64,000 bases of DNA, taken from positions 1-64,000 of the forward strand of contig VJWM01000218.1 of the NCBI GenBank assembly GCA_010909165.1, read 5' to 3'. This document shows positions 9,401 through 42,095 of the stretch, in pieces. Below the pieces are notes generated by a model that worked only from the letters and a program-made list of their open reading frames with translations, was not told the origin of the DNA and did no database searches. Origin of the DNA: Anthoceros angustus. Taxonomy: Eukaryota; Plantae; Anthocerotophyta. Each line of letters opens with the position of its first letter. Within the stretch, counting starts at the first letter, position 1. The position numbers and the translations under genes are program-made.

Positions 9401-9429
9401 GAGCGTTGGCAAGGTGAATGAGTTGCTAT

Positions 9430-16511: not shown

Positions 16512-17119
16512 ATGGCGACATCTATGGATTTGGACGATCTTTCCTTGCTATTTTCCTTGCTCTTCTACTCATGTTTCCAAGCATATTGCTAGGCGATTAG
16601 GAGTCACTTGCGAACGTCAAGAGGATAGATATTGATGACGATGATATTGAGGGCTCCACGAAAACCGCCTAGTGGTCCTAGCCCCAAGAATGAGCCGTGG
16701 ATGCCTCCTCTAGATCCACAGGTGATTGTTCGAGGAGACGAAGGCATCTTGAGGGCTCCTAGAAACCACCTAGTGGTGCTAGCCTGTAATGAGCCCGGGA
16801 TGCCTCCTCTCGATGTAGAGAAAGTGACTGCTCAAGGAGACGACGCATCTTGAGGGCTCCAGTGAAACCACCTAGCGGTGCTAGCTCGGCAATGAGCCCG
16901 GGATGCCTCTAGAGGCAAAGAAAGTAATTGTTGAGGGCACAAAGGCATCTTGAGAGCTCCAAGAAAACCACCTAGTGGTGCTAGCCCCGGCAATGAGCTG
17001 GATGCCTCCTCTAGATCCATCAAGGTGACTCTTGAGGAGACGAGCGCATCTTGAGGGCTCCACGAAACCACCTAGCGGTGCTAGCCGGCAATGAGCACAG
17101 GATGCCTCTAGATCCATAG
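16512..17119 (+). CDS. Secreted polypeptide precursor, 5 CLE/IDA-like RKPPSG(P/A)S..N motifs (copy 1; indels in assembly)
   Basis: Signal-peptide-coding start shared with other copies; five ~102-bp repeats reading ILRAPRKPPSG(P/A)SxxNEPxMPPLD; TAG stop. Frame continuity needs indel correction. Confidence 0.7.
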
Positions 17120-18815
17120 AGAGTCATTTTTCAACTTGTCAATATTGAGTGTAGAAGTAATGGCTCATACAAGGCACAAGTGGGAATTATAATGTGCATA
17201 TGTCGCTCACCCTTGGACACCCTTTTCGTTGGGAAGGTGTGGTATTGAAACGGGAGATATTTTCTTGTCGATATTTATTGAAGAATTTAACGAACTTATT
17301 ATGTTAACAATAAACAATAATTCGGATTTACTAACTATTGATCTTTTGATGTTAATACGACATTAAAGGGAATATGTTACTTGACCCCATCATTTCACTC
17401 CGGAACAAGGATGTGGAAATGCATGTCACACCATTTGGTCTACACCGTGGCTTTAGCATCGTCTGAGAAGACGATCCCCAGATGAGCCCCATTGCATATA
17501 GCACCAGCCCAAGCCGTTGAGAGGGATGGGAGAAAAGTGATAGCAAGCTGCACAAAGCACCAAGCCGTTGAGAGGGATGGGAGAAAAGTGATAGCAAGCC
17601 TGTCTACACACCAAGCAGTGGAATTGAAGGACAAGACTACCGCACTGTGAATACGCAAGTTTCTTGAGGAGTGGCGAAATGGTCATCGGTGAAACCACCT
17701 AGCGGTGCTAGCCTGCAATGAGCCCGGGATGCCTCCTCTAGATCCACAGGTGATTGTTCGAGGAGGCTTGGCGGTAGCTGGAAACCGTGAGTACTTGCAT
17801 CTTGCAGCATGATAGACCCGAGCTCGCGATGGAGAAAGAATTAGGACACGGACTTAGAATATCTAGGAGATTGGAGACAGGGGTAGCCGCAAAAACCCCT
17901 TAGGTTGAAAGGTCCTCTCATGTTACACATTGGTATGCCAAAAATGAACCTACCTAGCTCAAGACCGCGAGGACATCCAAGCCCTCGGGACAAGGTATTG
18001 GGTCCCATCCTTTCCTTTGAAGTCGCTTTCCTACATACTTGGAGTACAAACGCTGCTAGAGGACATCTACAACGGCTTCCACACACCGCTCCATCTAGTC
18101 CGTACAATACTAATGAACTTACCGCCACTGCATCACAACTCAAGGTCCGATCCACCAAGATTGGAGTATTCACGGACCCCAACCGCCGGAGCTCTACTCG
18201 CGTTGCTACCTCGAGCAGGCGCGGACGCTGGTCCTTCACCAGGCGAGGCCGGTGGCCAGACTTGCAGTGAGCCTGCGGCTAAACTCTCCTTATGTCAAGG
18301 GGAGAAATTCCATATAGTGCAAGGAATCGATCTCGATCTTCGAGAGGTGTTCTCCTAGGACGTTTAGAATCGTGCTACTATCTAAGAGTTTGATTCTATA
18401 GGATTTCTGTTCAACTCACCGTGCTTTGAGGTGATCGAACACTTTTAGACCGGACTTGCTCTTGACGACACCCATTGCTCCGCGTCATTGCATATTTGCT
18501 TATCACGAATTTGGACAACAAAATAAAGGTGTAGCACTAGCGACCACGAGGTCCTAGGATACGACTAGTCTGCAATGTATGAAGCGGGTAATCAATCTAC
18601 AAACATTTAATCGAGTACTTGGGGCTATGATACCATATTAACAACAAAAACTATAGAGAACTTGTACAATTGAATAAGTGCAACTAATCGATCAATTACA
18701 AAATTATCCTAAATACTTGTGTGGTGGTATTGTGGTGTATGTTCAAAATTAACCTAAATGAATAAATAATATTGGATAGGTTAAATTACCCTAACCTCTA
18801 ATGTAGCTAAAGAAA

Positions 18816-19030
18816 ATGGCAACATCTATGAGATTTGGATGATGTTTCCTTGCTAATTTTCTTGGTCTTCTACTCATGTTTCGAGCATGCTCGGATATAC
18901 TAGGAGTCACTTACCAAACATCAAGAGGATAGAATCGATAATAGCTAGCATCTATCTTGAGCTAGCTCCAAGAAAACCACCAAGTAGTGCTAGCCACAGT
19001 AATGAGCCCCGAGAAGCCTCCTCCATTTAG
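18816..19030 (+). pseudogene. Single-motif paralog pseudogene
   Basis: Same sequence as 13396-13609, including the TGA. Confidence 0.8.
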
Positions 19031-21904
19031 AATATTTGAGAAAAATTAAGAGCAACATCAAGTGAGCCCATTTGATATAAAGAATCCCTATGGGAGTTTC
19101 TTTCCCACCATGCCTTTTCCTCTTGGTTTCTCCATCCACCTTTTGATTTTTGTACTTAGTACTTGACACGATGGAGCGAATGGAGACAAAAACTTTGAAC
19201 TCAAAACTAAGGCCATCTACCTTGCGCATTGAAAAATGGGTTGGGGCATTCACAAAGTTTCTCAAACAACCTATCTCATGGCGCAACAACTAGAACTAGA
19301 TGGCGCTCACGGATAGATGCATGAAGTTTATTACACGCACTTGGGAAACTAGCTGCCCTATGCAAGATAGGGAAATGCCTCTAGCAATACTAAGTCACCC
19401 TAGTATCACTATCATTTGTATAATACAAGTATGGAGAAGGGGAGCAGAGAACACGGAGACGGAGGAACTTATATAGAGGTGGGGGCGATGAATCGTCGAG
19501 AGCACCGTGAACTTCGCTATTGGGAGCGGATGGCCTGCGGTGAACAAAAGGAACTCCTAGCGTATGCCAAACTCCTCCGCAGCACCTCAAAATGGGCGCC
19601 CGCTAAAGCCGGGCTAGGATGCGGGATGTAGATGGCGAGAGACCCTAGGATCGTAACTTAGCGAACCACGGTTCGTTTGGTAAACCCGATGACATGTTAA
19701 GGAAGGCCAAGGATTCTTAGAGGGTGATGTATAATCTATGACAAAATCTATGTAAAAGTAGCATCACAAAATAGACCTCAAAAGTCGCAACAAGGGCATA
19801 TTTTCTAGAATTTCATACATCAAAATTTGAGAGAAAAAGGCAAAAAGAGAACTAGAGACTCATATGAGTGAGCTGGGAATTTGGGGTTAAGGAAAGGGAG
19901 AGGTGTCTGATGGTTTTGGTGCGTGTGGAACCTCCTAGTTAGTCTTCTCATTTCTTGTGGTTCCGTTGATAGGGTTTTACTTGTACACTCATAGGCCATG
20001 GTTCCTAGTAGGTTCCAAATTTGTATTGGCGGATTTTGGCTTTGTGTGTCCTTGTGATGATTTGGAGGTTTTGGTTTTCGATCGCTGGCGATGGGGGCTT
20101 TGGCTCGATTCTGGCTCTTCTCGGTTGCTCGGGTTCTTGGTGTTGCGTGCCGGATGATGGTGAATTAGGGCCCGAGCTGTAGGTTAATTTTGTCTACAAG
20201 TTACATTTGGTATGAGGGGTTTGCTCTCGTCTTCGCTTGGCAAGGGAGGCGCTATTTTGATCTATGGAGGATGAGGTTTCGCTTCTCTTAGTATCATTTT
20301 CGGTCTCAATTTGGTTTCAAAATAAAGCGTGATTTTTCACAAAATAAAAACCATGCTCCCAAGCCGCTTAACGATGGATGAGTCCACCCCAATACCTATT
20401 AGAACTCACGATGTCTCATTTGAGGAAGCCAATGTGCCTTTTCCAAGAGGCACTTATGTAGTTATTTGGGTTTCTTCCTTCTAGCGAGTAATTGCAAGAT
20501 ATATATTAATACATATTTATTTATAGATCATTAGGCGTATGCAGCCATGAGGCTATGATGCCTCTATTTACATTTTTTCACCAGCAATGCTTGCGGTAGA
20601 TTTTTCAAATTCTAATTCTAATATTATAATAGCGTAAAGAGGTTTTGGTCCTATGGAGCTTGTTGTGGTGTATATTAATACATATAGACCACAATAAGTG
20701 CATTTAAAACCCTACAATTTGGAAAGTCTACATTTTAGATAAGCCTATGGAGGTAGTTCTAGATGGAACATACATCCAAGATAAAGCCAAGTTGAAGAGG
20801 CTGGCAAAACATTAAAACAAGGTCCTCATTTGACACTATCACCAAGTCATTCAAAATACCTTGATGGAGCTAGCCCTAAATGGAACACATACCCAAAGAC
20901 GAAGGCCCCTTAACAATCATCAAGTATTTATGATAACCTTGTGGAGTTTGCTCGAGACGAAACAAACGCTCAAGCACGGCTTCCTTGAAGAGAGTAGGTT
21001 CCCATTATAACATTGTACCACCAAGTATGTCAAATCACCTTGTGGAGTGTGACCAGAGGAACATACGCACAAGTACAAAGTCCCTTGAAGAAACTAGGTC
21101 AAATACCTACAATCAAACTTGGGTAGGTACCCATCCATTATTCTTCCGTTGACGTGAAGAGTGGTGTATCAAATTTGAGGTTGAGTTATTATCCTAGCAT
21201 TATTCTAAAAATGTCGAGATAAGAAAGGTAATTTCAAAGAAAAATAGAAGTGTAGGAGAGGGGACAATGTGTGTGTGTTGGGGGTAACTAGTGGAGAAAG
21301 TGATTGGGAGCGAGAGAGTATGGGGTGCAAGAAGAAAAGAAAAGGAAGGAGGGACAAGATTTATGAGTAAAAGGAAATATTATAAAAATAGAAATAGATT
21401 GAAAAAATAAAACATAAAATATGGAAAAGAGTGAAAAAGATAGAAGATAAAAAGAAAAAGAAAAAGTGAAGAAGATATCAAACAAAAATTGTTTGAATAC
21501 CTAGTTGAAATCTTCTTTTGATATTATGTATTGAAGAAGAATAAAGTCATTGAATTTAGGTAACATGGGATCGATAAGAAAAAGATTGTATATCGAGATA
21601 TAAATGAGTTTGTTCTCTATATATGTACAAGTCCTCTCATCACAATTTCACATATTTGACGCACTTGCTATCTCCTCGTGAGTTATTCTCTTATTAGGTA
21701 CATTTGTCGTTAGGTTTGATTGTAGTATTGCTCTTAGATTTGCTTAGGTTTGATTGTGATATTGCTCTTAGATTTGCTTAGATGTGATTGTAATTTTGGT
21801 CTTAGACTTGTTGTGCATTGAAATGGGTAGAGTATTGGCGAAGATCTTTTGTATAGAAAATGTAACGATTGCTTGATGTTGCTTGGTTTGTGTAGCTAGA
21901 GAAA

Positions 21905-22517
21905 ATGGCGACATCTATGGGATTTGGACGATCTTTCCTTGCTATTTTCCTTGCTCTTCTACTCATGTTTCCAAGCATATTGCTAGGCGTACTAGGAGTC
22001 ACTTGCAACGCCAAGAGGATAGATATTGATGACAAGATATTGAGGGCTCCACGAAACCGCCTTAGTGGTCCTAGCCCGAATGAGCCGGGATGCCTCCTCT
22101 AGATCCACGTAAGGTGATTGTTCGAGGAGACGACGCATCTTGAGGGCTCCTAGAAAACCACCTAGTGGTGCTAGCCACAGTAATGAGCCCGGATGCCTCC
22201 TCGATGTAGAGAAAGTGACTGCTCAAGGAGACGACGCATCTTGAGGGCTCCACGGAAACCACCTAGCGGTGCTAGCTCGGCAATGAGCTGGGATGCCTCC
22301 TCTAGAGGCAAAGAAAGTAATTGTTGGAGGCACAAAGGCATCTTGAGAGCTCCAAGAAAACCACCTAGTGGTGCTAGCCACAGCAATGAGCACAGGATGC
22401 CTCCTCTAGATCCATCAAGGTGACTCTTGAGGAGACGAGCGCATCTTGAGGGCTCCACGGAAACCACCTAGCGGTGCTAGCCGCAATGAGCACAGGATGC
22501 CTCCTCTAGATCCATAG
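21905..22517 (+). CDS. Secreted polypeptide precursor, 5 motifs (copy 2)
   Basis: ORF track: MATSMGFGRSFLAIFLALLLMFPSILLGVLGVTCNAKRIDIDDKILRAPR (n-region R, hydrophobic core), then ILRAPRKPPSGAS repeats ending NEHRMPPLDP*. Confidence 0.75.
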
Positions 22518-24156
22518 AGAGTCATTTTTCAACTTGTCAATATTGAGTGTAGAAGTAATGGCTCATACAAGGCACAAGTGGGAATTATAATGTGCATATG
22601 TCGCTCACCCTTGGACACCCTTTTCGTTGGGAAGGTGTGGTATTGAAACGGGAGATATTTTCTTGTCGTATATTTATTGAAGAATTTAACTGAACTTATT
22701 ATGTTAACAATAAACAATAATTCGGATTTACTAACTATTGATCTTTTGATGTTAATACGACATTAAAGGGAATGTGTTACTTGACCCCATCATTTCACTC
22801 CGGAACAAGGATGTGGAAATGCATGTCACACCATTTGGTCTACACCGTGGCTTTAGCCGATACGAGAAGACGATCCCCCATCGATGAGCCCCATTGCATA
22901 TAGCACCACCAAGCCGTTGAGAGGGATGGAGAAAGTGATAGCAAGCTGCCTACACAAAGACCAAGCGGTGGAATTGAAGGACAAGACTACCGCACGGTGT
23001 GAATACGCAAGTTTCGAGGAGTGGCGAAATGGTCATCGTGCAACTTTCAGCAAGATAATCCCACAATCGAACACTTTTAGACCGGACTTGATGTTGCTTG
23101 GTTTGTGTAGCTGAAACCAGTGAGTCGCATCTTGCGATGATAGACCCGAGCTCGCGATGGAGAAAGAATTAGGACACGGGACTTAGAATATCTAGGAGAT
23201 TGGAGACACAGGTAGCCGCAAAACCCCTTAGGTTGAAAGGTCCTCTCATGTTACAAGACATTGGTATGCCAAAATGAACCTACCTAGCTCAAGACCGCGA
23301 GGACATCCAAGCCCTCGTGACAAGGTATTGGGTCCCATCCTTTCCTTTGAAGTCGTTTCCTACATACTTGGAGTACAAACGCTTGCTAGAGGACATCTAC
23401 AACGGCTTCCACACACCGCTCCATCTAGTCCGTACAATACTAATGAACTTACCCCGCCACTGCATCACAACTCGGGCGGTCCAATGACCTGGTCCACCAA
23501 AGATTGGAGTATTCACGGACCCCAACCGGAGCTCTACTCGCGTTGCTACCTCGAGCAGGCGCGGACGCTGGTCCTTCACCAGCGAGGCCGGCCAGACTTG
23601 CAGTGAGCCTGCGGCTAAACTCTCCTTATGTCAAGGGGAGAAATTCCATATAGTGCAAGGAATCGATCTCCGATCTTCGAGAGGTGTTCTCCTAGGACGT
23701 TTAGAATCGGCTACTATCTAAGAGTTTGATTCTATAGGGATTTCTGTTCAACTCACTGTGCTTTGAGGTGATCACAACACTTTTAGACCGGACTTGCTCT
23801 TGACGACACCCATTGCTCCGCGTCATTGCATATTTGCTTATCACGAATTTGGACAACAAAATAAAGGTGTAGCACTAGCGACCACGAGGTCCTAGGATAG
23901 ACTAGTCTCGCAATGTATGAAGCGGGTAATCAATCTACAAACATTCGATCGAGTACTTGGGGCTATGATACCATATTAATAAATAAAACTATAGAGAACT
24001 TGTACAATTGAATAAGTGCAACTAATCGATCGAATTACAAAATTATCCTAAATACTTGTGTGGTGGTATTGTGGTGTATGTTCAAAATTAACCTAAATGA
24101 ATAAATAATATTGGATAGGTTAAATTAACCCTAACCTCTAACAGAAGCTAAAGAAA

Positions 24157-24374
24157 ATGGCAACATCTATGAGATTTGGATGATGTTTCCTTGCTAATTT
24201 TCTTGGTCTTCTACTCATGTTTCCGAGCATGCTCTGGATATACTAGGAGTCACTTACCAAACATCAAGAGGATAGATACCGATAATAGCTAGCATCTATC
24301 TTGAGCTAGCTCCAAGAAAACCACCAAGTAGTGCTAGCCACAGTAATGAGCCACGAGAAGCCTCCTCCATTTAG
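24157..24374 (+). pseudogene. Single-motif paralog pseudogene
   Basis: Same sequence as 13396-13609, including the TGA. Confidence 0.8.
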
Positions 24375-27300
24375 AATATTTGAGAAAAATTAAGAGCAAC
24401 AAGTGAGCCCATTTGATATAAAGAATCCCTATGGGAGTTTCTTTCCCACCATGCCTTTTCCTCTTGGTTTTCCATCCACCTTTTGATTTTTGTACTTAGT
24501 ACTTGACACGATGGAGCGAATGGAGACAAAAACTTTGAACTCAAAACTAAGGCCATCTACCTTGCATTGAAAAATGGGTTGGGGGCATTCACAAAGTTTC
24601 TCAAACAACCTATCTCACGCAACAACTAGAACTAGATGGCCCGCATGATAGATGCATGAAGTTTATTACACGCACTTGGGAAACTAGCTGCCCTATGCAA
24701 GATAGGAAATGCCTCTAGCAATACTAAGTCACCCTAGTATCACTATCATTTGTATAATACAAGTATGGAGAAGGGGAGCAGAACCCGGAGACGGAGGAAC
24801 TTATATAGAGGTGGGGGACGATGAATCGTCGAGAGCACCGTGAACTTCGCTATTGGGAGCGGATGGTCGCCTGCAGGTGAACAAAAGGAACTCCTAGCGT
24901 ATGCCAAACTCCTCCGCAGCACCTCAAAAATGGGCGCCCGCTAAAGCCGGGCTAGGATGCGGGATGTAGATGGCGAGAGACCCTAGGATCGTAATTTAGC
25001 GAACCACGGTTCGTTTGGTAAACCCGATGACATGTTAAGGAAGGCCAAGGATTCTTAGAGGTGATGTATAATCTATGACAAAATCTATGTAAAAGTAGCA
25101 TCACAAAATAGACCTCAAAAGCAACAAGGGCATATTTTCTAGAATTTCATACATCAAATTTGAGAGAAAAAAGAAAAAGGCAAAAAGAGAACTAGAGACT
25201 CAATATGAGTGAGCTGGGAATTTGGGGTTAAGGAAAGGGAGAGGTGTGCTGATGGTTTTGGTGCGTGTGGAACCTCCTAGTTAGTCTTCTCATTTCTTGT
25301 GGTTCCGTTGATAGGGGTTTTACTTGTACACTCATAGGCCATGGTTCCTAGTAGGTTCCAAATTTTGTATTGGCGGATTTTGGCTTTGTGGCGGTGTCCT
25401 TGTGATGATTTGGAGGTTTTGGTTTTCGATCGCTGGCGATGGGGGCTTTGGCTCCGATTCGGTGGCTCTTCTCGGTTGCTCGGGTTCTTGGTGTTGCGTA
25501 ATCGGATGATGGTGAATTAGGGCCCGAGTCTGTGAGGTTAATTTTGTCTACAAGTTACATTTGGTATGAGGGGTTTGTTTTGCTCTCGTCTTCGCTTGGC
25601 AAGGGAGGCGCTATTTTGATCTATGGAGGATGAGGTTGCTGGCTTCTCTTAGTATCATTTTCGGTCTCAATTTGCGGTTTCAAAATAAAGCGTGATTTTT
25701 TTCACAAAATAAAAACCATGCTCCCTGAAGCCGCTTAACAGTGGATGAGTCCACCCCAATACCTATTAGAACTCACGATGTCTCATTTGAGGAAGCCAAT
25801 GTGCCTTTTCCAAGAGGCACTTATGTAGTTATTTGGGTTTCTTCCTTCTAGCGAGTAATTGCAAGATATATATTAATACATATTTATTTATAGATCATTA
25901 GGCGATGCAGCCATGAGGCTATGATGCCTCTATTTACATTTTTTCACCAGCAATGCTTGCAGTAGATTTTTCAAATTCCTAATTCTAATATTATAATAGC
26001 GAAAGAGGTTTTGGTCCTATGGAGCTTGTTGTGGTGTATATTAATACATATAGACCACAATAAGTGCATTTAAAACCCTACAATTTGGAAAGTCTACATT
26101 TTAGATAAGCCTATGGAGGTAGTTCTAGATGGAACATACATCCAAGATAAAGTCGCCAAGTTGAAGAGACTGGCAAAACATTAAAACAAGGTCCTCATTT
26201 CAAGACACTATCACCAAGTCATTCAAATACCTTGATGGAGCTAGCCCTAAATGGAACACATACCCAGACGAAGGCCCTTAACAATCATCAAGTATTTATG
26301 ATAACCTTGTGGAGTTTGCTCGAGACGAAACAAACGCTCAAGCACGCGGCTTCCCTTGAAGAGAGTAGGTTCCCATTATAACATTGTACCACCAAGTATG
26401 TCAAATCACCTTGTGGAGTGTGACCGAGAGGGAACATATGCACAAGTACAAAGTCCCCTTGAAGAAACTAGGTCAAATACCTACAATCAAACTTGGGTAG
26501 GTACCCATCCATTATTCTTCTGTTGACGTGAAGAGCTGGGCGGGTATCAAATTTGAGGTTGAGCGCTGTTATTATCCTAGCATTATTCTAAAAATGTCGT
26601 AGATAAGAAAGGTAATTTCGAAGAAAAATAGAAGTGTAGGAGAGGGGGACAATGTGTGTGTGTTGGGGGAGGGGGGTAACTAGTGGAGAAAGTGATTGGG
26701 AACGAGAGAGTATGGGGTGCAAGAAGAAAAGAAAAGGAAGGAGGGACAAGATTTATGAGTAAAAAGGAAATATTATAAAAATAGAAATAGATTGAAAAAA
26801 ATAAAACATAAAATATGGAAAAGAGTGAAAAAGATAGAAGATAAAAAGAAAAAGAAAAAGTGAAGAAGATATCAAACAAAAATTGTGAATACCTAGTTGA
26901 AATCTTCTTTTGATATTATGTATTGAAGAAGAATAAAGTCATTGAATTTAGGTAACATGGGATCGACAAGAAAAAGATTGTATATCGAGATATAAATGAG
27001 TTTGTTCTCTATATATGTACATGTCCTCTCATCACAATTTCATACATCAAAAATTTGAGAGAAAAAAGGCAAAAAGAGAACTAGAGACTTATGAGTGAGC
27101 TGGGAATTTGGGGTTAAGGAAAGGGAGAGGTGTCCTTGTGATGATTTGGAGGTTTTGGTGGAACCTCCTAGTTAGTCTTCTCATTTCTTGTGGTTCCGTT
27201 GATAGGGTTTTACTTGTACACTCATAGGCCATGGTTCCTAGTAGGTCCAAATTTTGTATTGGCGGATTTTGGCTTTGTGTCCTTGTGATGATTTGGAGGT

Positions 27301-29143
27301 TTTGGTTTTCGATCGCTGGCGATGGGGGCTTTGGCTCGATTCTGGCTCTTCTCGGTTGCTCGTGTTCTTGGTGTTGCGTAATCGGATGATGGTGAATTAG
27401 GGCCCGAGTCTGTGAGGTTAATTTTGTCTACAAGTTACATTTGGTATGAGGGGTTGCTCGCCTCGCTTGGCAAGGGAGGCGCTATTTTGATCTATGGAGG
27501 ATGAGGTTTCGGCTTCTCTTAGTATCATTTTCGGTCTCAATTTGCGGTTTCAAAATAAAGCGTGATTTTTTCACAAAATAAAAACCATGCTCAAGCCGCT
27601 TAACAAAAGGATGAGTCCACCCCAATACCTATTAGAACTCACGATGTCTCATTTGAGGAAGCCAATGTGCCTTTTCCAAGAGGCACTTATGTAGTTATTT
27701 GGGTTTCTTCCTTCTAGCGAGGAATTGCAAGATATATATTAATACATATTTATTTATAGATCATTAGGCGATGCAGCCATGAGGCTATGATGCCTCTATT
27801 TACATTTTTTCACCAGCAATGCTTGCAGCAGTAGATTTTTCAAATTCCTAATTCTAATATTATAATAGCGAAGAGGTTTTGGTCCTATGGAGCTTGTTGT
27901 GGTGTATATTAATACATATAGACCACAATAAGTGCATTTAAAACCCTACAATTTGGAAAGTCTACATTTTAGATAAGCCTATGGAGGTAGTTCTAGATGG
28001 AACATACATCCAAGATAAAGTCGCCAAGTTGAAGAGACTGGCAAAACATTAAAACAAGGTCCTCATTTCAAGACACTATCACCAAGTCATTCAAATACCT
28101 TGATGGAGCTAGCCCTAAATGGAACACATACCAAAGACGAAGGCCCTTAACAATCATCAAGTATTTATGATAACCTTGTGGAGTTTGCTCGAGACGAAAC
28201 AAACGCTCAAGCACGCGGCTTCCTTGAAGAGAGTAGGTTCCCATTATAACATTGTACCACCAAGTATGTCAAATCACCTTGTGGAGTGTGACCGAGAGGA
28301 ACATACGACAAGTACAAAGTCCCCTTGAAGAAACTAGGTCAAATACCTACAATCAAACTTGGGTAGGTACCCATCCATTATTCTTCCGTTGACGTGAAGA
28401 GTCATGTATCAAATTTGAGGTTGAGCGTTATTATCCTAGCATTATTCTAAAAATGTCGAGATAAGAAAGGTAATTTCAAAGAAAAATAGAAGTGTAGGAG
28501 AGGGACAATGTGTGTGTTAGGGGGGTAACTAGTGGAGAAAGTGATTGGGAACGAGAGAGTATGGGGTGCAAGAAGAAAAAGAAAAGGAAGGAGGGACAAG
28601 ATTTATGAGTAAAAGGAAATATTATAAAAATAGAAATAGATTGAAAAAATAAAACATAAAATATGGAAAAGAGTGAAAAAGATAGAAGATAAAAAGAAAA
28701 AGAAAAAGTGAAGAAGATATCAAACAAAAATTGTGAATACCTAGTTGAAATCTTCTTTTGATATTATGTATTGAAGAAGAATAAAGTCATTGAATTTAGG
28801 TAACATGGGATCGATAAGAAAAAGATTGTATATCGAGATATAAATGAGTTTGTTCTCTATATATGTACAAGTCCTCTCATCACAATTTCACATATTTGAT
28901 CGCACTTGCTATCTCGTGAGTTATTCTCTTATTAGGTACATTTGTCGTTAGGTTTGATTGTAGTATTGCTCTTAGATTTGCTTAGGTTTGATTGTGATAT
29001 TGCTCTTAGATTTGCTTAGGTGTGATTGTAATTTTGGTCTTAGACTTGTTGTGCATTGAAATGGGTAGAGTATTGGCGAAGATCTTTTGTATAGAAAATG
29101 TAATCGATTGCTTGATGTTGCTTGGTTTGTGTAGCTAGAGAAA

Positions 29144-29250
29144 ATGGCGACATCTATGGGATTTGGACGATCTTTCCTTGCTATTTTCCTTGCTCTTCTA
29201 CTCATGTTTCCAAGCATATTGCTAGGCGATTAGGGAGTCACTGTCAACGC
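29144..29250 (+). pseudogene. Truncated precursor copy (signal peptide only)
   Basis: ATGGCGACATCTATGGG start, then a jump at ~29250 back into upstream unit sequence (GCGAAGAGGTTTTGG). Confidence 0.7.
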
Positions 29251-30511
29251 GAAGAGGTTTTGGTCCTATGGAGCTTGTTGTGGTGTATATTAATACATAT
29301 AGACCACAATAAGTGCATTTAAAACCCTACAATTTGGAAAGTCTACATTTTAGATAAGCCTATGGAGGTAGTTCTAGATGGAACATACATCCAAGATAAA
29401 GCCAAGTTGAAGAGACTGGCAAAACATTAAAACAAGGTCCTCATTTCAAGACACTATCACCAAGTCATTCAAATACCTTGATGGAGCTAGCCCTAAATGG
29501 AACACATACCCAGACGAAGGCCCTTAACAATCATCAAGTATTTATGATAACCTTGTGGAGTTTGCTCGAGACGAAACAAACGCTCAAGCACGCGGCTTCC
29601 TTGAAGAGAGTAGGTTCCCATTATAACATTGTACCACCAAGTATGTCAAATCACCTTGTGGAGTGTGACCGAGAGGACATACGCAAGTACAAAGTCCCCT
29701 TGAAGAAACTAGGTCAAATACCTACAATCAAACTTGGGTAGGTACCCATCCATTATTCTTCCGTTGACGTGAAGAGTCATGTATCAAATTTGAGGTTGGT
29801 ATTATCCTAGCATTATTCTAAAAATGTCGAGATAAGAAAGGTAATTTCAAAGAAAAATAGAAGTGTAGGAGAGGGACAATGTGTGTGTGTTGGGGGTAAC
29901 TAGTGGAGAAAGTGATTGGGAACGAGAGTATGGGGTGCAAGAAGAAAAAGAAAAGGAAGGAGGGACAAGATTTATGAGTAAAAGGAAATATTATAAAAAT
30001 AGAAATAGATTGAAAAAATAAAACATAAAATATGGAAAAGAGTGAAAAAGATAGAAGATAAAAAGAAAAAGAAAAAGTGAAGAAGATATCAAACAAAAAT
30101 TGTGAATACCTAGTTGAAATCTTCTTTTGATATTATGTATTGAAGAAGAATAAAGTCATTGAATTTAGGTAACATGGGATCGATAAGAAAAAGATTGTAT
30201 ATCGAGATATAAATGAGTTTGTTCTCTATATATGTACATGTCCTCTCATCACAATTTCACATATTTGACACTTGCTATCTCCCGTGAGTTATTCTCTTAT
30301 TAGGTACATTTGTCGTTAGGTTTGATTGTAGTATTGCTCTTAGATTTGCTTAGGTTTGATTGTGATATTGCTCTTAGATTTGCTTAGATGTGATTGTAAT
30401 TTTGGTCTTAGACTTGTTGTGCATTGAAATGGGTAGAGTATTGGCGAAGATCTTTTGTATAGAAAATGTAATCGATTGCTTGATGTTGCTTGGTTTGTGT
30501 AGCTAGAGAAA

Positions 30512-31119
30512 ATGGCGACATCTATGGGATTTGACGATCTTTCCTTGCTATTTTCCTTGCTCTTCTACTCATGTTTCCAAGCATATTGCTAGGCGTACTA
30601 GGGAGTCACTTGCAACGCCAAGAGGATAGATATTGATGATGATATTGAGGGCTCCACGAAACCGCCTAGTGGTCCTAGCCCGAATGAGCCGTGGATGCCT
30701 CCTCTAGATCCACGAAGGTGATTGTTCGAGGAGACGAAGGCATCTTGAGGGCTCCTAGAAAACCACCTAGTGGTGCTAGCCCCGTAATGAGCCCGGGATG
30801 CCTCCTCGATGTAGAAAGTGACTGCTCAAGGAGACGACGCATCTTGAGGGCTCCAGTGAAACCACCTAGCGGTGCTAGCTCCGGCAATGAGCGGGATGCC
30901 TCCTCTAGAGGCAAAGAAAGTAATTGTTGGAGGGCACAAAGGCATCTTGAGAGCTCCAAGAAAACCACCTAGTGGTGCTAGCCACAGCAATGAGCTCGGA
31001 TGCCTCCTCTAGATCCATCAAGGTGACTCTTGAGGAGACGAGCGCATCTTGAGGGCTCCACGAAACCACCTAGCGGTGCTAGCCCGCAATGAGCCCGGAT
31101 GCCTCCTCTAGATCCATAG
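30512..31119 (+). CDS. Secreted polypeptide precursor, 5 motifs (copy 3)
   Basis: Same signal region and five motif repeats; ORF 30691 shows ILRAPRKPPSGASP and KPPSGASSGNE. Confidence 0.7.
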
Positions 31120-31379: not shown

Positions 31380-32250
31380 ACCCCATCATTTCACTCGGAA
31401 CAAGGATGTGGAAATGCATGTCACACCATTTGGTCTACACCGTGGCTTTAGCATCGATACGAGAAGACGATCCCCAGATGGGCCCCATTGCATATAGCAC
31501 CACCCAAGCCGTTGAGAGGATGGGAGAAAAGTGATAGCAAGCCTGCCTACACACCAAGCAGCAGTGGAATTGAAGGACAAGACTACCGCACCGGTGTGAA
31601 TACGCAAGTTCTTGAGGAGTGGCGAAATGGTCATCGGTGCAGCAACTTTCAGCAAAGATAATCCCACAATCGAACACCGCCGAATGAGGCTTGGCGGGCT
31701 GGAAACCAGTGAGTACCGCATCTTGCAGCATGATAGACCCGAGCTCGCGATGGAGAAAGAATTAGGACACGGACTTAGAATATCTAGGAGATTGGAGACA
31801 CAGGTAGCCGCAAAACCCCTTAGGTTGAAAGGTCCTCTCATGTTACTGACACATTGGTATGCCAAAAATGAACCTACCTAGCTCGACCGCGAGGACATCC
31901 AAGCCCTCGGGACAAGGTATTGGGTCCCATCCTTTCCTTTGAAGTCGCTTTCCTACATACTTGGAGTACAAACGCTGTTAGAGGACATCTACAACGGCTT
32001 CCACACACCGTCCATCTAGTCCGTACAATACTAATGAACTTACCCGCCACTGCATCACGAACTGGCGGTCCAATGACCGCGGGTCCACCAAAGATTGAGT
32101 ATTCGGACCCCAACCCGGAGCTCTACTCGCGTTGCTACCTCGAGCAGGCGACGGACGCTGGTCCTTCACTGGCGAGGCCGGTGGCCAGACTTGCAGTGAG
32201 CCTGTATGGCTAAACTCTCCTTATGTCAAGGGGAGAAATTCCATATAGTG
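31380..32250 (+). mobile_element. Probable highly degenerate LINE (L1-type) ORF2 3' remnant, present in each array unit
   Basis: With G>A reversions and indels the segment can read YTV..., WRKV(W)QA...RLP, TIEH, SI(W)SV(R), the order expected for a zf-RVT/C-terminal LINE region. Reconstruction is speculative. Confidence 0.3.
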
Positions 32251-32757
32251 CAAGGAATCGATCTCCGATCTTCGAGAGGTGTTCTCCTAGGACGCTTAGA
32301 ATCGGCTACTATCTAAGAGTTTGATTCTATAGGGATTTCTGTTCAACTCACTGTGCTTTGAGGTGATCAAGAACACTTTTAGACCAGACTTGCTCTTCAA
32401 AGACGACACCCATTGCTCGCGTCATTGCATATTTGCTTATCACGAATTTGGACAACAAAATAAAGGTGTAGCACTAGCGACCACGAGGTCCTAGGATACG
32501 ACTAGTCTGCAATGTATGAAGCGGGTAATCAATCTACAAACATTCGAATCGAGTACTTGGGGCTATGATACCATATTAACAAAATAAAACTATAGAGAAC
32601 TTGTACAATTGAATAAGTGCAACTAATCGATCGAATTACAAAATTATCCTAAATACTTGTGTGGTGGTATTGTGGTGTATGTTCAAAATTAACCTAAATG
32701 AATAAATAATATTGGATAGGTTAATTAACCCTAACCTCTAACGATTAGCTAAAGAAA

Positions 32758-32972
32758 ATGGCAACATCTATGAGATTTGGATGATGTTTCCTTGCTAATT
32801 TTCTTGGTCTTCTACTCATGTTTGAGCATGCTACCGGATATACTAGGAGTCACTTACCAAACATCAAGAGGATAGATACCGATAATAGCTAGCATCTATC
32901 TTGAGCTAGCTCCAAGAAAACCACCAAGTAGTGCTAGCCCGTAATGAGCCCCGAGAAGCCTCCTCCATTTAG
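32758..32972 (+). pseudogene. Single-motif paralog pseudogene
   Basis: Same sequence as 13396-13609, including the TGA. Confidence 0.8.
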
Positions 32973-35870
32973 AATATTTGAGAAAAATTAAGAGCAATGC
33001 CCCAAGTGAGCCCATTTGATATAAAGAATCCCTATGGGAGTTTCTTTCCCACCATGCCTTTTCCTCTTGGTTTTCCATCCACCTTTTGATTTTTGTACTT
33101 AGTACTTGACACGATGGAGCGAATGGAGACAAAACTTTGAACTCAAAACTAAGGCCATCTACCTTGCGCATTGAAAAATGGGTTGGGGGCATTCACAAAG
33201 TTTCTCAAACAACCTATCTCAATCGCAACAACTAGAACTAGATGGCGCTCATGGATAGATGCATGAAGTTTATTACACGCACTTGGGAAACTAGCTGCCC
33301 TATGCAAAGATAGGAAATGCCTCTAGCAATACTAAGTCACCCTAGTATCACTATCATTTGTATAATACAAGTATGGAGAAGGGGAGCAGAACCGAGACGG
33401 AGGAACTTATATAGAGGTGGGGGACGATGAATCGTCGAGAGCACCGTGAACTTCGCTATTGGGAGGTACGCCTGGGTGCCGAAAAAAGGAACTCCTAGCG
33501 TATGCCAAACTCCTCCTGCAGCACCTCAAAATGGGCGCCCGCTAAAGCCGGGCTAGGATGCGGGATGTAGATGGCGAGAGACCCTAGGATCAGAATTTAG
33601 CGAACCACGGTTCGCTTTGGTAAACCCGATGACATGTTAAGGAAGGCCAAGGATTCTTAGAGGGTGATGTATAATCTATGACAAAATCTATGTAAAAGTA
33701 GCATCACAAAATAGACCTCAAAAAGTCAACAAGGGGCATATTTTCTAGAATTTCATACATCAAAATTTGAGAGAAAAAGGCAAAAAGAGAACTAGAGACT
33801 CAATATGAGTGAGTGGGAATTTGGGGTTAAGGAAAGGAGAGGTGTCTGATGGTTTTGGTGCGTGTGGAACCTCCTAGTTAGTCTTCTCATTTCTTGTGGT
33901 TCCGTTGATAGGGGTTTTACTTGTACACTCATAGGCCATGGTTCCTAGTAGGGTCCAAATTTGTATTGGCGGATTTTGGCTTTGTGGCGGTGTCCTTGTG
34001 ATGATTTGGAGGTTTTGGTTTTCGATCATGGGGGCTTTGGCCCGATTCTGGCTCTTCTCGGTTGCTCGTGTTCTTGGTGTTGCGTGCCGGATGATGGTGA
34101 ATTGGGGCCCGAGCTGTAGGTTAATTTTGTCTACAAGTTACATTTGGTATGAGGGGTTTGTTTTGCTCTCGCCTTCGCTTGGCAAGGGAGGCGCTATTTT
34201 GATCTATGGAGGATGAGGTTTCGGCTTCTCTTAGTATCATTTTCGGTCTCAATTTGCGGTTTCAAAATAAAGCGTGATTTTTTCACAAAATAAAACCATG
34301 CTCCTCAAGCCGCTTAACAAAGGATGAGTCCACCCCAATACCTATTAGAACTCACGATGTCTCATTTGAGGGAAGCCAATGTGCCTTTTCCAAGAGGCAC
34401 TTATGTAGTTATTTGGGTTTCTTCCTTCTAGCGAGTAATTGCAAGATATATATTAATACATATTTATTTATAGATCATTAGGCGTATGCAGCCATGAGGC
34501 TATGATGCCTCTATTTACATTTTTTCACCAGCAATGCTTGCAGCAGTAGATTTTTCAAATTCCTAATTCTAATATTATAATAGCGAAAGAGGTTTTGGTC
34601 CTATGGAGCTTGTTGTGGTGTATATTAATACATATAGACCACAATAAGTGCATTTAAAACCCTACAATTTGGAAAGTCTACATTTTAGATAAGCCTATGG
34701 AGGTAGTTCTAGATGGAACATACATCCAAGATAAAGTCGCCAAGTTGAAGAGGCTGGCAAAACATTAAAACAAGGTCCTCATTTCAAGACACTATCACCA
34801 AGTCATTCAAATACCTTGATGGAGCTAGCCCTAAATGGAACACATACCCAAAGACGAAGGCCCCTTAACAATCATCAAGTATTTATGATAACCTTGTGGA
34901 GTTTGCTCGAGACGAAACAAACGCTCAAGCACGCGGCTTCCTTGAAGAGAGTAGGTTCCCATTATAACATTGTACCACCAAGTATGTCAAATCACCTTGT
35001 GGAGTGTGAGAGGGGACATACGCACAAGTACAAAGTCCCCTTGAAGAAACTAGGTCAAATACCTACAATCAAACTTGGGTAGGTACCCATCCATTATTCT
35101 TCCGTTGACGTGAAGAGTCATGTATCAAATTTGAGGTTGAGTTATTATCCTAGCATTATTCTAAAAATGTCGAGATAAGAAAGGTAATTTCAAAGAAAAA
35201 TAGAAGTGTAGGAGAGGGACAATGTGTGTGTTGGGGGTAACTAGTGGAGAAAGTGATTGGGAACGAGAGAGTATGGGGTGCAAGAAGAAAAAGAAAAGGA
35301 AGGAGGGACAAGATTTATGAGTAAAAGGAAATATTATAAAAATAGAAATAGATTGAAAAAAATAAAACATAAAATATGGAAAAGAGTGAAAAAGATAGAA
35401 GATAAAAAGAAAAAGAAAAAGAAAAAGAAAAAGTGAAGAAGATATCAAACAAAAATTGTCAATACCTAGTTGAAATCTTCTTTTGATATTATGTATTGAA
35501 GAAGAATAAAGTCATTGAATTTAGGTAACATGGGATCGACAAGAAAAAGATTGTATATCGAGATATAAATGAGTTTGTTCTCTATATATGTACAAGTCCT
35601 CTCATCACAATTTCACATATTTGATCGCACTTGCTATCTCCCGTGAGTTATTCTCTTATTAGGTACATTTGTCGTTAGGTTTGATTGTAGTATTGCTCTT
35701 AGATTTGCTTAGGTTTGATTGTGATATTGCTCTTAGATTTGCTTAGATGTGATTGTAATTTTGGTCTTAGACTTGTTGTGCATTGAAATGGGTAGAGTAT
35801 TGGCGAAGATCTTTTGTATAGAAAATGTAATCGATTGCTTGATGTTGCTTGGTTTGTGTAGCTAGAGAAA

Positions 35871-36483
35871 ATGGCGACATCTATGGGATTTGGACGATCT
35901 TTCCTTGCTATTTTCCTTGCTCTTCTACTCATGTTTCCAAGCATATTGCTAGGCGATTAGGGAGTCACTTGCCGAACGTCAAGAGGATAGATATTGATGA
36001 TGACATATTGAGGGCTCCACGAAAACCGCCTAGTGGTCCTAGCCCCAATGAGCCGTGGATGCCTCCTCTAGATCCATCAAGGTGACTCTTCGAGGAGACG
36101 AAGGCATCTTGAGGGCTCCTAGAAAACCACCTAGTGGTGCTAGCCTGTAATGAGCCCGGGATGCCTCCTCTCGATGTAGAGAAAGTGACTGCTCAAGGAG
36201 ACGACGCATCTTGAGGGCTCCAGTGAAACCACCTAGCGGTGCTAGCTCGCAATGAGCTCGGGATGCCTCCTCTAGAGGCAAAGAAAGTAATTGTTGGAGG
36301 GCACAAAGGCATCTTGAGAGCTCCAAGAAAACCACCTAGTGGTGCTAGCCCGCAATGAGCTCGGGATGCCTCCTCTAGATCCATCAAGGTGACTCTTGAG
36401 GAGACGCATCTTGAGGGCTCCAGTGAAACCACCTAGCGGTGCTAGCCCGCAATGAGCCCGGGATGCCTCCTCTAGATCCATAG
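35871..36483 (+). CDS. Secreted polypeptide precursor, 5 motifs (copy 4)
   Basis: KRIDIDDDILRAPRKPPSGPSPNEPWMPPLDP plus four further repeats; TAG at 36481-36483. Confidence 0.7.
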
Positions 36484-38148
36484 AGAGTCATTTTCAACTT
36501 GTCGATTGAGTGTAGAAGTAATGGCTCATACAAGGCACAAGTGGGAATTATAATGTGCATATGTCGCTCACCCTTGGACACCCTTTTCGTTGGGAAGGTG
36601 TGGTATTGAAACGGGAGATATTTTCTTGTCGTATATTTATTGAAGAATTTAATCGAACTTATTATGTTAACAATAAACAATAATTCGGATTTACTAACTA
36701 TTGATCTTTTGATGTTAATACATTAAAGGGAATGTGTTACTTGACCCCATCATTTCACTCCGGAACAAGGATGTGGAAATGCATGTCACACCATTTGGTC
36801 TACACCGTGGCTTTAGCCGCATCCGACACGAGAAGACGATCCCCTGCATCGATGGGCCCCATTGCATATAGCACCAGCCCAAGCCGCTGAGAGGGATGGG
36901 AGAAAAGTGATAGCAAGCCTGTCTACACAGCACCAAGCAGTGGAATTGAAGGACAAGACTACCGCACCGGTGTGAATACGCAAGTTTACCGAGGAGTGGC
37001 GAAATGGTCATCGCGGCAGCAACTTTCAGCAAAGATAATCCCACAATCGAACACCCTCGATGAGCCCGGATGCCTCCTCTCGATGTAGAGAAAGTGACTG
37101 CTCAAGGAGACGAGCGCATCTTGCAGCATGATAGACCCGAGCTCGCGATGGAGAAAGAATTAGGACACGGACTTAGAATATCTAGGAGATTGGAGACACA
37201 GTAGCCGAAAACCCCTTAGGTTGAAAGGTCCTCTCATGTTACAAAGACATTGGTATGCCAAAAATGAACCTACCTAGCTCAAGACCGCGAGGACATCCAA
37301 GCCCTCGTGACAAGGTATTGGGTCCCATCCTTTCCTTTGAAGTCGCTTCCTACATACTTGAGTACAAACGCTAGAGGACATCTACAACGGCTTCCACACA
37401 CCGCTCCATCTAGTCCGTACCAATACTAATGAACTTACCCGCCACTGCATCATGAACTCGGCGGTCCAATGATCATGTCCACCAAGATTGAGTATTCACG
37501 GACCCCAACCGGAGCTCTACTCGCGTTGCTACCTCGAGCAGGCGCCGGACGCTGGTCCTTCACCAGCGAGGCCGCCAGACTTGCAGTGAGCCTGCGGCTA
37601 AACTCTCCTTATGTCAAGGGGAGAAATTCCATATAGTGCAAGGAATCGATCTCGATCTTCGTGAGAGGTGTTCTCCTAGGACGCTTAGAATCGGCTACTA
37701 TCTAAGAGTTTGATTCTATAGGGATTTCTGCTCAACTCACTGTGCTTTGAGGTGATCAGCAACACTTTTAGACCAGACTTGCTCTTCAAAGACGACACCC
37801 ATTGCTCCGTCATTGCATATTTGCTTATCACGAATTTGGACAACAAAATAAAGGTGTAGCACTAGCGACCACGAGGTCCTAGGATAGACTAGTCCGCAAT
37901 GTATGAAGCGGGTAATCAATCTACAAACATTCTATTAATCGAGTACTTGGGGCTATGATACCATATTAACAAATGAAAACTATAGAGAACTTGTACAATT
38001 GAATAAGTGCAACTAATCGATCGAATTACAAAATTATCCTAAATACTTGTGTGGTGGTATTGTGGTGTATGTTCAAAATTAACCTAAATGAATAAATAAT
38101 ATTGGATAGGTTAATTAACCCTAACCTCTAACATAGAAGCTAAAGAAA

Positions 38149-38364
38149 ATGGCAACATCTATGAGATTTGGATGATGTTTCCTTGCTAATTTTCTTGGTC
38201 TTCTACTCATGTTTCCGAGCATGCTCGGATATACTAGGAGTCACTTACCAAACATCAAGAGGATAGATATCGATAATAGCTAGCATCTATCTTGAGCTAG
38301 CTCCAAGAAAACCACCAAGTAGTGCTAGCCCCGTAATGAGCCCCGAGAAGCCTCCTCCATTTAG
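38149..38364 (+). pseudogene. Single-motif paralog pseudogene
   Basis: Same sequence as 13396-13609, including the TGA. Confidence 0.8.
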
Positions 38365-41282
38365 AATATTTGAGAAAAATTAAGAGCAACAGCCCCAAGT
38401 GAGCCCATTTGATATAAAGAATCCCTATGGGAGTTTCTTTCCCACCATGCCTTTTCCTCTTGGTTTCTCCATCCACCTTTTGATTTTTGTACTTAGTACT
38501 TGACACGATGGAGCGAATGGAGACAAAAACTTTGAACTCAAAACTAAGGCCATCTACCTTGCATTGAAAATGGGTTGGGGCATTCACAAAGTTTCTCAAA
38601 CAACCTATCTCACCGGCGCAACAACTAGAACTAGATGGCGCTCCGCGGATAGATGCATGAAGTTTATTACACGCACTTGGGAAACTAGCTGCCCTATGCA
38701 AGATAGGAAATGCCTCTAGCAATACTAAGTCACCCTAGTATCACTATCATTTGTATAATACAAGTATGGAGAAGGGGAGCAGAGAACCCGGAGACGGAGG
38801 AACTTATATAGAGGTGGGGGACGATGAATCGTCGAGAGCACCGTGAACTTCGCTATTGGGAGCGGATGGCGCTCAAGCCGCTTAACAAAAGGAACTCCTA
38901 GCGTATGCCAAACTCCTCAAAGACCTCAAAATGGGCGCCCGCTAAAGCCGGGCTAGGATGCGGATGTAGATGGCAGAGACCCTAGGATCAGAATTTAGCG
39001 AACCACGGTTCGCTTTGGTAAACCCGATGACATGTTAAGGAAGGCCAAGGATTCTTAGAGGGTGATGTATAATCTATGACAAAATCTATGTAAAAGTAGC
39101 ATCACAAAATAGACCTCAAAAAGTTGCAACAAGGGGCATATTTTCTAGAATTTCATACATCAAAAATTTGAGAGAAAAAAGGCAAAAAAGAGAGCTAGAG
39201 ACTCAATATGAGTGAGCTGGGGAATTTGGGGTTAAGGAAAGGGAGAGGTGTGCTGATGGTTTTTGGTGCGTGTGGAACCTCCTAGTTAGTCTTCTCATTT
39301 CTTGTGGTTCCGTTGATAGGGGTTTTACTTGTACACTCATAGGCCATGGTTCCTAGTAGGTTCCAAATTTGGTATTGGCGGATTTTGGCTTTGTGGCGGT
39401 GTCCTTGTGATGATTTGGAGGTTTTTGGTTTTCGATCGCTGCTGGCGACAGGGGGCTTTTGGCTCCGATTCAGTGGCTCTTCTCGGTTGCTCAGGTTCTT
39501 GGTGTTGCGTGCACTGGATGATGGTGAATTGGGGCCCGAGCTCCGTAGGTTAATTTTGTCTACAAGTTACATTTGGTATGAGGGGTTTGCTCGCCTTCGC
39601 TTGGCAAGGGAGGCGCTATTTTGATCTATGGAGGATGAGGTTTCGGCTTCTCTTAGTATCATTTTCGGTCTCAATTTGCGGTTTCAAAATAAAGCGTGAT
39701 TTTTCACAAAATAAAACCATGCTCCTCAAGCCGCTTAACAAAAGGGATGAGTCCACCCCAATACCTATTAGAACTCACGATGTCTCATTTGAGGGAAGCC
39801 AATGTGCCTTTTCCAAGAGGCACTTATGTAGTTATTTGGGTTTCTTCCTTCTAGCGAGTAATTGCAAGATATATATTAATACATATTTATTTATAGATCA
39901 TTAGGCGTATGCAGCCATGAGGCTATGATGCCTCTATTTACATTTTTTCACCAGCAATGCTTGCAGTAGATTTTTCAAATTCCTAATTCTAATATTATAA
40001 TAGCGTAAAGAGGTTTTGGTCCTATGGAGCTTGTTGTGGTGTATATTAATACATATAGACCACAATAAGTGCATTTAAAACCCTACAATTTGGAAAGTCT
40101 ACATTTTAGATAAGCCTATGGAGGTAGTTCTAGATGGAACATACATCCAAGATAAAGTCGCCAAGTTGAAGAGACTGTGGCAAAACATTAAAACAAGGTC
40201 CTCATTTCAAGACACTATCACCAAGTCATTCAAATACCTTGATGGAGCTAGCCCTAAATGGAACACATACCCAAAGACGAAGGCCCCTTAACAATCATCA
40301 AGTATTTATGATAACCTTGTGGAGTTTGCTCGAGACGAAACAAACGCTCAAGCACGCGGCTTCCCTTGAAGAGAGTAGGTTCCCATTATAACATTGTACC
40401 ACCAAGTATGTCAAATCACCTTGTGGAGTGTGACCGAGAGGAACATACGCACAAGTACAAGTCCCTTGAAGAAACTAGGTCAAATACCTACAATCAAACT
40501 TGGGTAGGTACCCATCCATTATTCTTCCGTTGACGTGAAGAGTCATGTATCAAATTTGAGGTTGAGCGTTATTATCCTAGCATTATTCTAAAAATGTCGA
40601 GATAAGAAAGGTAATTTCAAAGAAAAATAGAAGTGTAGGAGAGGGACAATGTGTGTGTTGGGGGTAACTAGTGGAGAAAGTGATTGGGAACGAGAGAGTA
40701 TGGGGTGCAAGAAGAAAAGAAAAGGAAGGAGGGACAAGATTTATGAGTAAAAGGAAATATTATAAAATAGAAATAGATTGAAAAAATAAAACATAAAATA
40801 TGGAAAAGAGTGAAAAAGATAGAAGATAAAAAAAAAGAAAAAGTGAAGAAGATATCAAACAAAAATTAAGTGAATACCTAGTTGAAATCTTCTTTTGATA
40901 TTATGTATTGAAGAAGAATAAAGTCATTGAATTTAGGTAACATGGGATCGATAAGAAAAAGATTGTATATCGAGATATAAATGAGTTTGTTCTCTATATA
41001 TGTACAAGTCCTCTCATCACAATTTCACATATTTGATCGCACTTGCTATCTCCGGTGAGTTATTCTCTTATTAGGTACATTTGTCGTTAGGTTTGATTGT
41101 AGTATTGCTCTTAGATTTGCTTAGGTTTGATTGTGATATTGCTCTTAGATTTGCTTAGGTGTGATTGTAATTTTGGTCTTAGACTTGTTGTGCATTGAAA
41201 TGGGTAGAGTATTGGCGAAGATCTTTTGTATAGAAAATGTAATCGATTGCTTGATGTTGCTTGGTTTGTGTAGCTAGAGAAA

Positions 41283-42095
41283 ATGGCGACATCTATGGGA
41301 TTTGGACGATCTTTCCTTGCTATTTTCCTTGCTCTTCTACTCATGTTTCCAAGCATATTGCTAGGCGATTAGGGAGTCACTTGAACGCCAAGAGGATAGA
41401 TATTGATGACAAGATATTGAGGGCTCCACGAAAACCGCCTAGTGGTCCTAGCCCGAATGAGCCGTGGATGCCTCCTCTAGATCCACGAAGGTGATTGTTC
41501 GAGGAGACGACGCATCTTGAGGGCTCCTAGAAAACCACCTAGTGGTGCTAGCCCGTAATGAGCCCGGGATGCCTCCTCTCGATGTAGAGAAAGTGACTGC
41601 TCAAGGAGACGACGCATCTTGAGGGCTCCAAAACCACCTAGCGGTGCTAGCTCGCAATGAGCTCGGGATGCCTCCTCTAGAGGCAAAGAAAGTAATTGTT
41701 GAGGGCACAAAGGCATCTTGAGAGCTCCAAGAAAACCACCTAGTGGTGCTAGCCCGTAATGAGCCCGGGATGCCTCCTCTCGATGTAGAGAAAGTGACTG
41801 CTCAAGGAGACGACGCATCTTGAGGGCTCCTAGAAAACCACCTAGCGGTGCTAGCTCGGCAATGAGCTGGGATGCCTCCTCTAGAGGCAAAGAAAGTAAT
41901 TGTTGGAGGGCACAAAGGCATCTTGAGAGCTCCAAGAAAACCACCTAGTGGTGCTAGCCCGGCAATGAGCCCGGATGCCTCCTCTAGATCCATCAAGGTG
42001 ACTCTTGAGGAGACGAGCGCATCTTGAGGGCTCCACGAAACCACCTAGCGGTGCTAGCTCGCAATGAGCCCGGGATGCCTCCTCTAGATCCATAG
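41283..42095 (+). CDS. Secreted polypeptide precursor, 7 motifs (copy 5)
   Basis: Seven AAACC(G/A)CCTAG(T/C)GGT(C/G)CTAGC cores at ~41430, 41530, 41630, 41730, 41833, 41936 and 42037. Confidence 0.7.

Follow-up and report, generated by a model that had tools for sequence, protein, structure and literature searches.

To our knowledge, no more than a handful of peptide families have been described from non-seed land plants, and precursors with several CLE motifs have been reported only from rice, wheat and Medicago. Some PIP precursors have two motifs, and in the Solanaceae and Convolvulaceae the precursors of the hydroxyproline-rich systemins are secreted proteins that each give rise to several Pro/Ser-rich peptides, a family not known outside a few angiosperm families. 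The bryophyte IDA peptide MpIDA1 reads EVPPQGPSPIHN; the C-terminal His-Asn of IDA is described as crucial for binding to HAESA-type receptors, and PIP and PIPL peptides are regarded as angiosperm-born (PMC8462819). Multi-domain CLE precursors from rice, wheat and Medicago carry 2–6 motifs at intervals of ~30–36 amino acids (PMC2254619). Here we analyse a stretch of 64,000 nucleotides of Anthoceros angustus DNA (contig VJWM01000218.1, positions 1 to 64,000, forward strand; hereafter the window), in which a gene built of internal repeats lies in several copies. We propose, with a probability of about 0.5, that the locus holds a tandem array, young and largely degenerate, of a lineage-specific gene encoding a secreted peptide precursor of the polyprotein type.

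Self-BLAST of the window reveals a unit of ~5.4 kb, repeated head to tail on the plus strand from 11302 to ~45434, the units being 94–96% identical and showing ~2% substitution diversity when aligned. Each comprises, in order, the repeat-bearing gene (type A), a gap of ~1.7 kb, a pseudogene of a paralogue (type B) and an unannotated remainder. Within type A, Tandem Repeats Finder detects arrays with a period of 99–103 nt at 16647–17108, 22040–22530, 30645–31117, 36004–36480 and 41417–42089 (scores 459–1009), and a sixth such array at 11315–11691. The motif units that make up these arrays are ~102 nt long and encode ILRAPRKPPSG(A/P)S..NE..MPPLD. An anchor scan places 5, 5, 5, 5 and 7 of them in copies a1 to a5, and four in copy a0 together with a split-off first unit at 157–240, giving 32 type-A motifs in total; all are on the plus strand, which is also the only one where the motif with PPSG comes up in a six-frame scan.

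Copy a0 consists of a 5′ part at 27–240, with the ATG, the signal-peptide region and the first motif unit severed in its spacer (91.7% match to 35845–36093), and a 3′ part at 11302–11702, with the remaining unit-1 spacer and units r2–r5. Copies a1 (16512–17108), a2 (21905–22530), a3 (30512–31117) and a4 (35871–36480) each have an ATG and five units, copy a5 (41283–42089) has an ATG and seven units, the r2–r3 pair being duplicated, and a truncated copy (29144–29257) has the signal-peptide region only. A preliminary description of this DNA had likewise counted six copies, one truncated copy and 32 motifs. The extent that it assigned to the family, 16512–42095, covers a1–a5 and the truncated copy but omits a0, and its gene inventory was incomplete, having missed six single-motif type-B paralogues.

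A start reading MATSMGFGRSF... lies at 16512, 21905, 29144, 30512, 35871 and 41283. The signal-peptide-like N-terminus of the preliminary description, MATSMGFGRSFLAIFLALLLMFPSILLG, is found exactly at four of these ATGs (21905, 29144, 35871 and 41283) and with 1-nt indels at the other two. By a hydropathy heuristic, this leader has a basic residue, an 18-residue hydrophobic core (Kyte–Doolittle mean up to 3.15) and then small residues, and in copies a0 and a2 it continues in frame into unit 1. The units that follow fall into five positional types, r1–r5, each orthologous from one gene copy to another. Across the motif units the Asn-Glu pair never varies, the full PPSGPSP core is present only in the first, and the last is followed by a conserved stop.

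Set beside IDA, the locus shares a signal-peptide-like start and a Pro-rich motif, and R-K-P-P-S-G-P-S-P of unit 1 matches the core of MpIDA1. An Arg likewise precedes the core in RIPPSGPSPIHN, a putative IDA-like precursor encoded elsewhere in this genome. The IDA core PPS(A/G)PS is represented by PPSGPS in unit 1 of each copy, whereas r2–r5 have PPSGAS, with the central Pro changed to Ala. Where IDA ends in His-Asn, none of the 32 units has an H-N pair, the core being followed by P-N-E or (H/P)(S/G)-N-E. The conserved block is 25 residues long here against 12–14 in IDA, and IDA has a single motif near the C terminus of a precursor of <100 residues, in contrast to the 5–7 units per type-A copy; a single motif is found only in the dead type B. 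Of the PIP/PIPL features, the SGPS core occurs in unit 1 only and the C-terminal GxGH is absent.

The comparison with CLE runs along similar lines. A small precursor with a signal-peptide-like N-terminus, as judged by the hydropathy heuristic, is common to both, and CLE residues R1, P4, S5 and G6 are present in the units, with P7 and P9 in unit 1 only. Motifs at ~35-residue intervals with mutually similar spacers recall the multi-domain CLE precursors, and rice CLE75 (..VHNEF) has a Glu after its Asn, as the units do here. His11 of the 12–13-residue CLE motif, R-x-x-P-x-G-P-x-P-x-H-(N/H), is absent, however, the Arg-to-Asn span is 10–11 residues rather than 12, and no sequence search connects the array gene to CLE proteins. 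Membership in CLE or IDA, to both of which the preliminary description had likened the motif, is therefore not supported on present sequence: the His-Asn or His is absent, the span from Arg to Asn is 1–2 residues short, the central Pro is Ala beyond the first unit and no profile or word search found a relative. The hydroxyproline-rich systemins provide the closest analogy for a multi-peptide precursor of defence signals, with no sequence relationship and with different peptide lengths and motifs.

One line of evidence for our proposal is the manner in which the units have diverged. Between unit types, the motif blocks ILRAPRKPPSGAS, NE and MPPL show pairwise DNA differences of 0.12, 0.00 and 0.04, against 0.28–0.37 in the spacers. 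The blocks are conserved 3–8 times as strongly; the preliminary description had named the lack of such a contrast (here 0–12% versus 28–37%) as something that would undo it. In the first block, the ILRAPRKPPSGAS frame shows seven synonymous and three non-synonymous changes, and the Arg codons vary among CGA, AGA and CGG. Four of the five other frames have 0–3 synonymous to 8–9 non-synonymous changes, and three of those four carry stops. No nonsense substitution occurs in the in-frame segments of 31 array units. The contrast between motif and spacer, together with the 7:3 ratio, indicates that the repeats evolved as coding sequence; by this signature they are of long standing, with selection having acted on the encoded peptide. 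A secreted multi-peptide precursor is a plausible reading of the gene.

Pro/Ser-rich tandem repeats (KPPSG, MPPL) behind a signal peptide could also belong to a secreted structural product, that is, a proline-rich, hydroxyproline-glycosylated wall protein of the extensin or PRP kind that stays uncut. We consider this decidedly improbable: Ser-Pro(3–5) blocks, Tyr cross-link motifs and long Pro runs are all absent, Pfam returns no extensin or PRP match, and charged, variable spacers separate the conserved blocks, as in polyprotein precursors.

A series of observations weighs against the proposal, beginning with the strand. The codon test alone leaves it unfixed, because the antisense frame LAPLGGFLGALKM, which shares third codon positions with the ILRAPRKPPSGAS frame, has five synonymous to four non-synonymous changes and no stop. 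This ratio, and the fact that the minus strand has the longest open reading frames (ORFs) in the arrays, would suit an alternative without plus-strand coding, in which the arrays are either a satellite-like repeat or a minus-strand gene, ORFs of 97–155 residues of repeat LAPLGGFLGALKM running through them. It is highly improbable in our view. With third positions shared, the antisense signal is inherited from the plus frame, whose own ratio is 7:3 as against 5:4, the other four frames lying at 0–3 to 8–9, and the minus-strand frame has neither an ATG with a leader nor a conserved end. Four features favour the plus frame: a start codon with a basic residue and a hydrophobic core, a leader that is in frame in a0 and a2, a conserved final stop and a paralogue of like arrangement.

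The second difficulty is the reading frame itself. The assembled sequence leaves no copy with an uninterrupted ORF: over the repeats, the longest on the plus strand is 93 residues, and 8–16 frame changes are needed per copy (~2.1% of the arrays). Comparison with short reads points to the assembly as the source of most of them. Over the listed short-read contigs there are 26 gaps in ~1620 nt (1.6%) and very few substitutions, for instance 8 gaps against 1 substitution over 366 nt; across 5.9 kb (35800–41700), 12 indel sites are listed, mostly in short homopolymers and in both directions, and 79 more are unlisted. Among the gene copies, the first 210 nt around the ATG differ only in single-base run lengths in six copies, and 66% of 1-nt indels between units fall in homopolymer runs, a modest enrichment over the background of 48%. 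All five inter-anchor distances peak at a multiple of three (21, 24, 12, 24 and 24), and nearly all deviants are shorter. The copies disagree most at two CG-rich spots that flank the Asn-Glu codons, which bears out, and doubles, the single CG-rich spot of disagreement in the preliminary description; there, variants containing A (CACAGT, CACAGG) are always 6 nt long, whereas those made of C and G only are 4, 5 or 6 nt. At one place the reads insert a G behind 41511, turning GACGACGC into GACGACGGC and joining VIVRGDDG in frame to ILRAP. From these comparisons we conclude that the frame breaks are largely assembly noise, the tandem repeats of the locus evidently not having been polished in this assembly. 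The density of frame breaks in a2 and a3 (~2%) equals the measured noise, so these copies cannot be called broken. More widely, at ~1.5–2% single-base indels in the tandem repeats of this assembly, ORF-based annotation will overlook such genes, and a broken frame by itself is weak evidence of a pseudogene.

Part of the frame loss is taken at face value by a further alternative, in which the TGA that follows the first unit (MPPLDPRR-stop) is the true end, the product is a prepropeptide of ~71 residues like ordinary IDA or CLE precursors and r2–r5 are untranslated 3′ sequence. Copies a3, a4 and a5 have this TGA as assembled, and only the first unit has the full PPSGPSP core. Copies a0, a1 and a2 nonetheless read through (lengths 24, 21 and 24). 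The TGA of a3 and a5 lies in CCACGAAGGTGA, where a0 has CCACGGAAGGTGA, in frame and without a stop; put differently, a0 carries CCACGGAAGG in frame where a3 and a5 carry CCACGAAGG, which gives the TGA. The missing base is in a CGG context, where short reads correct the assembly elsewhere, and the motif is kept in r2–r4 through synonymous changes, unlike untranslated DNA. A single-motif precursor is improbable on this evidence. Unit r4 has two frame-breaking lengths that are identical in all copies; the ORF may end there (MPPLDPSR-stop), the error may be systematic or the gene may be dead.

Not all damage can be put down to the assembly. Copy a0 is split at 240/11302, in its unit-1 spacer, by the insertion of a CACTA-type DNA transposon of ~11 kb (241–11301), which has the terminal inverted repeats CACTACTAG and CTAGTAGTG and a 3-bp target duplication, CGA. 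Its ORF at 5435–5863 matches DUF4218 (E = 1.9e-16), a domain usual in plant CACTA transposases. The copy at 29144 is truncated at a rearrangement junction, which follows from the patchwork of partial units detected by self-BLAST inside the array at 27036–30244; that segment matches 39149–41100, 35600–35986 and 40008–41100 of the reference unit. Codons 29–30, after the signal peptide, read GAT TAG in a1, 29144, a4 and a5; the ancestral junction, GTA CTA or similar, occurs in a0, a2, a3 and type B. A 296-nt short-read contig on 41086–41381 spans the TAG version of a5 gap-free, its single substitution lying some way off. Removal of this codon-30 TAG by splicing was considered and ruled out, there being no usable GT..AG pair of plausible length at this place.

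The type-B paralogue, with its one motif LAPRKPPSSASHSNE, is represented by a copy at 13396–13645 (end approximate) on the plus strand and by further copies starting at 18816, 24157, 32758, 38149 and 44574, six in all. It lies ~1.7 kb downstream of the type-A array and starts MATSMRFG-stop, the TGA at codon 9 being common to all six; a short-read contig over 38024–38391 has one substitution, at 38137, outside this TGA codon. Real lesions, copied together with the unit, are present in at least five of the seven type-A copies and in all six of type B. The view of the preliminary description that indels hide the ORF is therefore only half the explanation: single-base gaps account for noise at 1.6%, and real lesions also break most copies. 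Only a2 and a3, in which the ancestral junction is kept and, in a3, the frame breaks are single-base only, are without proven lesions and so may be intact. Because lesions were copied with the unit, expansion of the array continued after several copies were dead, which argues against selected dosage; copy number is no evidence for it, and the dosage amplification put forward in the preliminary description is, as an outcome of selection, not supported.

In comparisons between gene copies, moreover, conservation is no stronger in the array than in the remainder of the unit (nucleotide diversity 0.03–0.07 versus ~0.02), and no gene-specific dip in substitution diversity was found along the aligned units. 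Searches for relatives returned nothing. A 31-position repeat profile, run against 1.84 billion representative proteins, had no match with an E value of 0.001 or below; word-index searches with the 65-residue a2 ORF and the 93-residue two-motif ORF found no relative, longer relatives being invisible to them by length limits; and pieces of the gene gave nothing beyond chance level in Pfam at E up to 10. Profile and sequence searches of this sort have little power with short peptide motifs. Expression was judged from two sequencing runs of the organism, one of DNA and one possibly of RNA; no contig of the latter lies on the gene, which neither shows nor excludes transcription.

Much of this would be expected if the whole array were dead, that is, if a once-secreted family of repeat peptides had left only pseudogenes in the window, a2 and a3 included, its unit multiplied and eroded in a transposon-rich region. 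The lesions duplicated with the unit, the lack of a conservation dip over the gene between copies, the failure to find a transcript contig in the possible RNA run, the transposons within and beside the array and the frame-breaking lengths of r4, identical in every copy, all fit. Against it, the frame-break density of a2 and a3 is that of the measured assembly noise, the in-frame segments are free of nonsense substitutions, and the motif has been kept while the spacers diverged by ~30%, which speaks for a long past function with only recent decay in some copies. We regard a wholly dead array as possible but doubtful, and prefer the young, largely degenerate array of a precursor gene, of which one or two copies may have survived.

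Under this preferred reading, the ancestral gene, possibly represented today by a2 and a3, would have encoded a cleavable signal peptide, a short acidic linker (KRIDIDDK) and four to five modules of 34–35 residues (six to seven in a5), each made of a conserved 25-residue block, ILRAPRKPPSG(P/A)S-xx-NE-xx-MPPLD, and a variable, charged spacer of ~10 residues. The precursor would enter the secretory pathway, where subtilase-type proteases would cut in the spacers and free several Pro-rich, probably hydroxylated peptides with an Arg-x-Pro-Pro-Ser-Gly core; the invariant Asn could conceivably become the C terminus after trimming, and the peptides would serve as ligands, much as those of IDA and CLE do. 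The 5.4 kb unit would then have been multiplied by unequal crossing-over, at a time when several copies were already dead. We infer processing and ligand action from the architecture and from analogy with multi-motif CLE precursors. The repeat architecture itself has a precedent in the CLE proteins with 2–6 motifs at ~30–36-residue intervals (PMC2254619).

Other features of the locus surround these genes. A tandem repeat of 34 nt in three copies, found by Tandem Repeats Finder at 41087–41187, 100–200 nt upstream of the ATG of a5, precedes every type-A ATG, with further instances at 16318–16418, 21710–21810, 28948–29048, 30316–30416 and 35675–35775; it may be a promoter-proximal element or merely part of the unit. 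Arrays a0 and a1, and no others, are followed ~600 nt downstream by lone fragments of the motif unit (KPPSGAS...), at 12262 and 17694; alignment of the units is poor over this stretch, owing to structural variation between them. None of the ten ORFs examined from the other ~4 kb of the unit matches Pfam, a 159-residue minus-strand ORF from the same part has no relative by word-index search, and the whole window has no match in Rfam. The minus strand at 36851–37360 is matched at ~92% identity by a contig of 3.3 kb from the run that is possibly of RNA, with a replaced block of 108 for 115 nt, which suggests a transcribed paralogue, elsewhere, of this unannotated part of the 5.4 kb unit; the ORFs of the stretch have no Pfam or protein match. 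The right part of the window is richer in GC and bears transposons, with a 334-nt repeat in two copies and a 32-nt tandem repeat in 7.8 copies (54559–55245 and 63424–63679). Both CACTA and gypsy elements are seen in the window, which fits a plant.

Most copies are dead, and the interest of the locus hinges on an open reading frame, and its expression, in a2 or a3. It is possible, if unlikely, that a2, a3 or both are intact and expressed and encode a hitherto unknown polyprotein precursor derived from an IDA-like gene, in which the His-Asn anchor was lost, the conserved block grew to 25 residues and was multiplied four to five times, and a new class of Asn-terminated hydroxyproline peptides arose with its own receptor. 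Should one copy be alive, a non-seed land plant would have in it a multi-motif, lineage-specific relative of the IDA/CLE-type ligands. The locus would then be a natural case of the birth of a ligand family, with the core kept, the receptor anchor lost and the motif multiplied, and it would also show the death of one, with most copies caught in decay.

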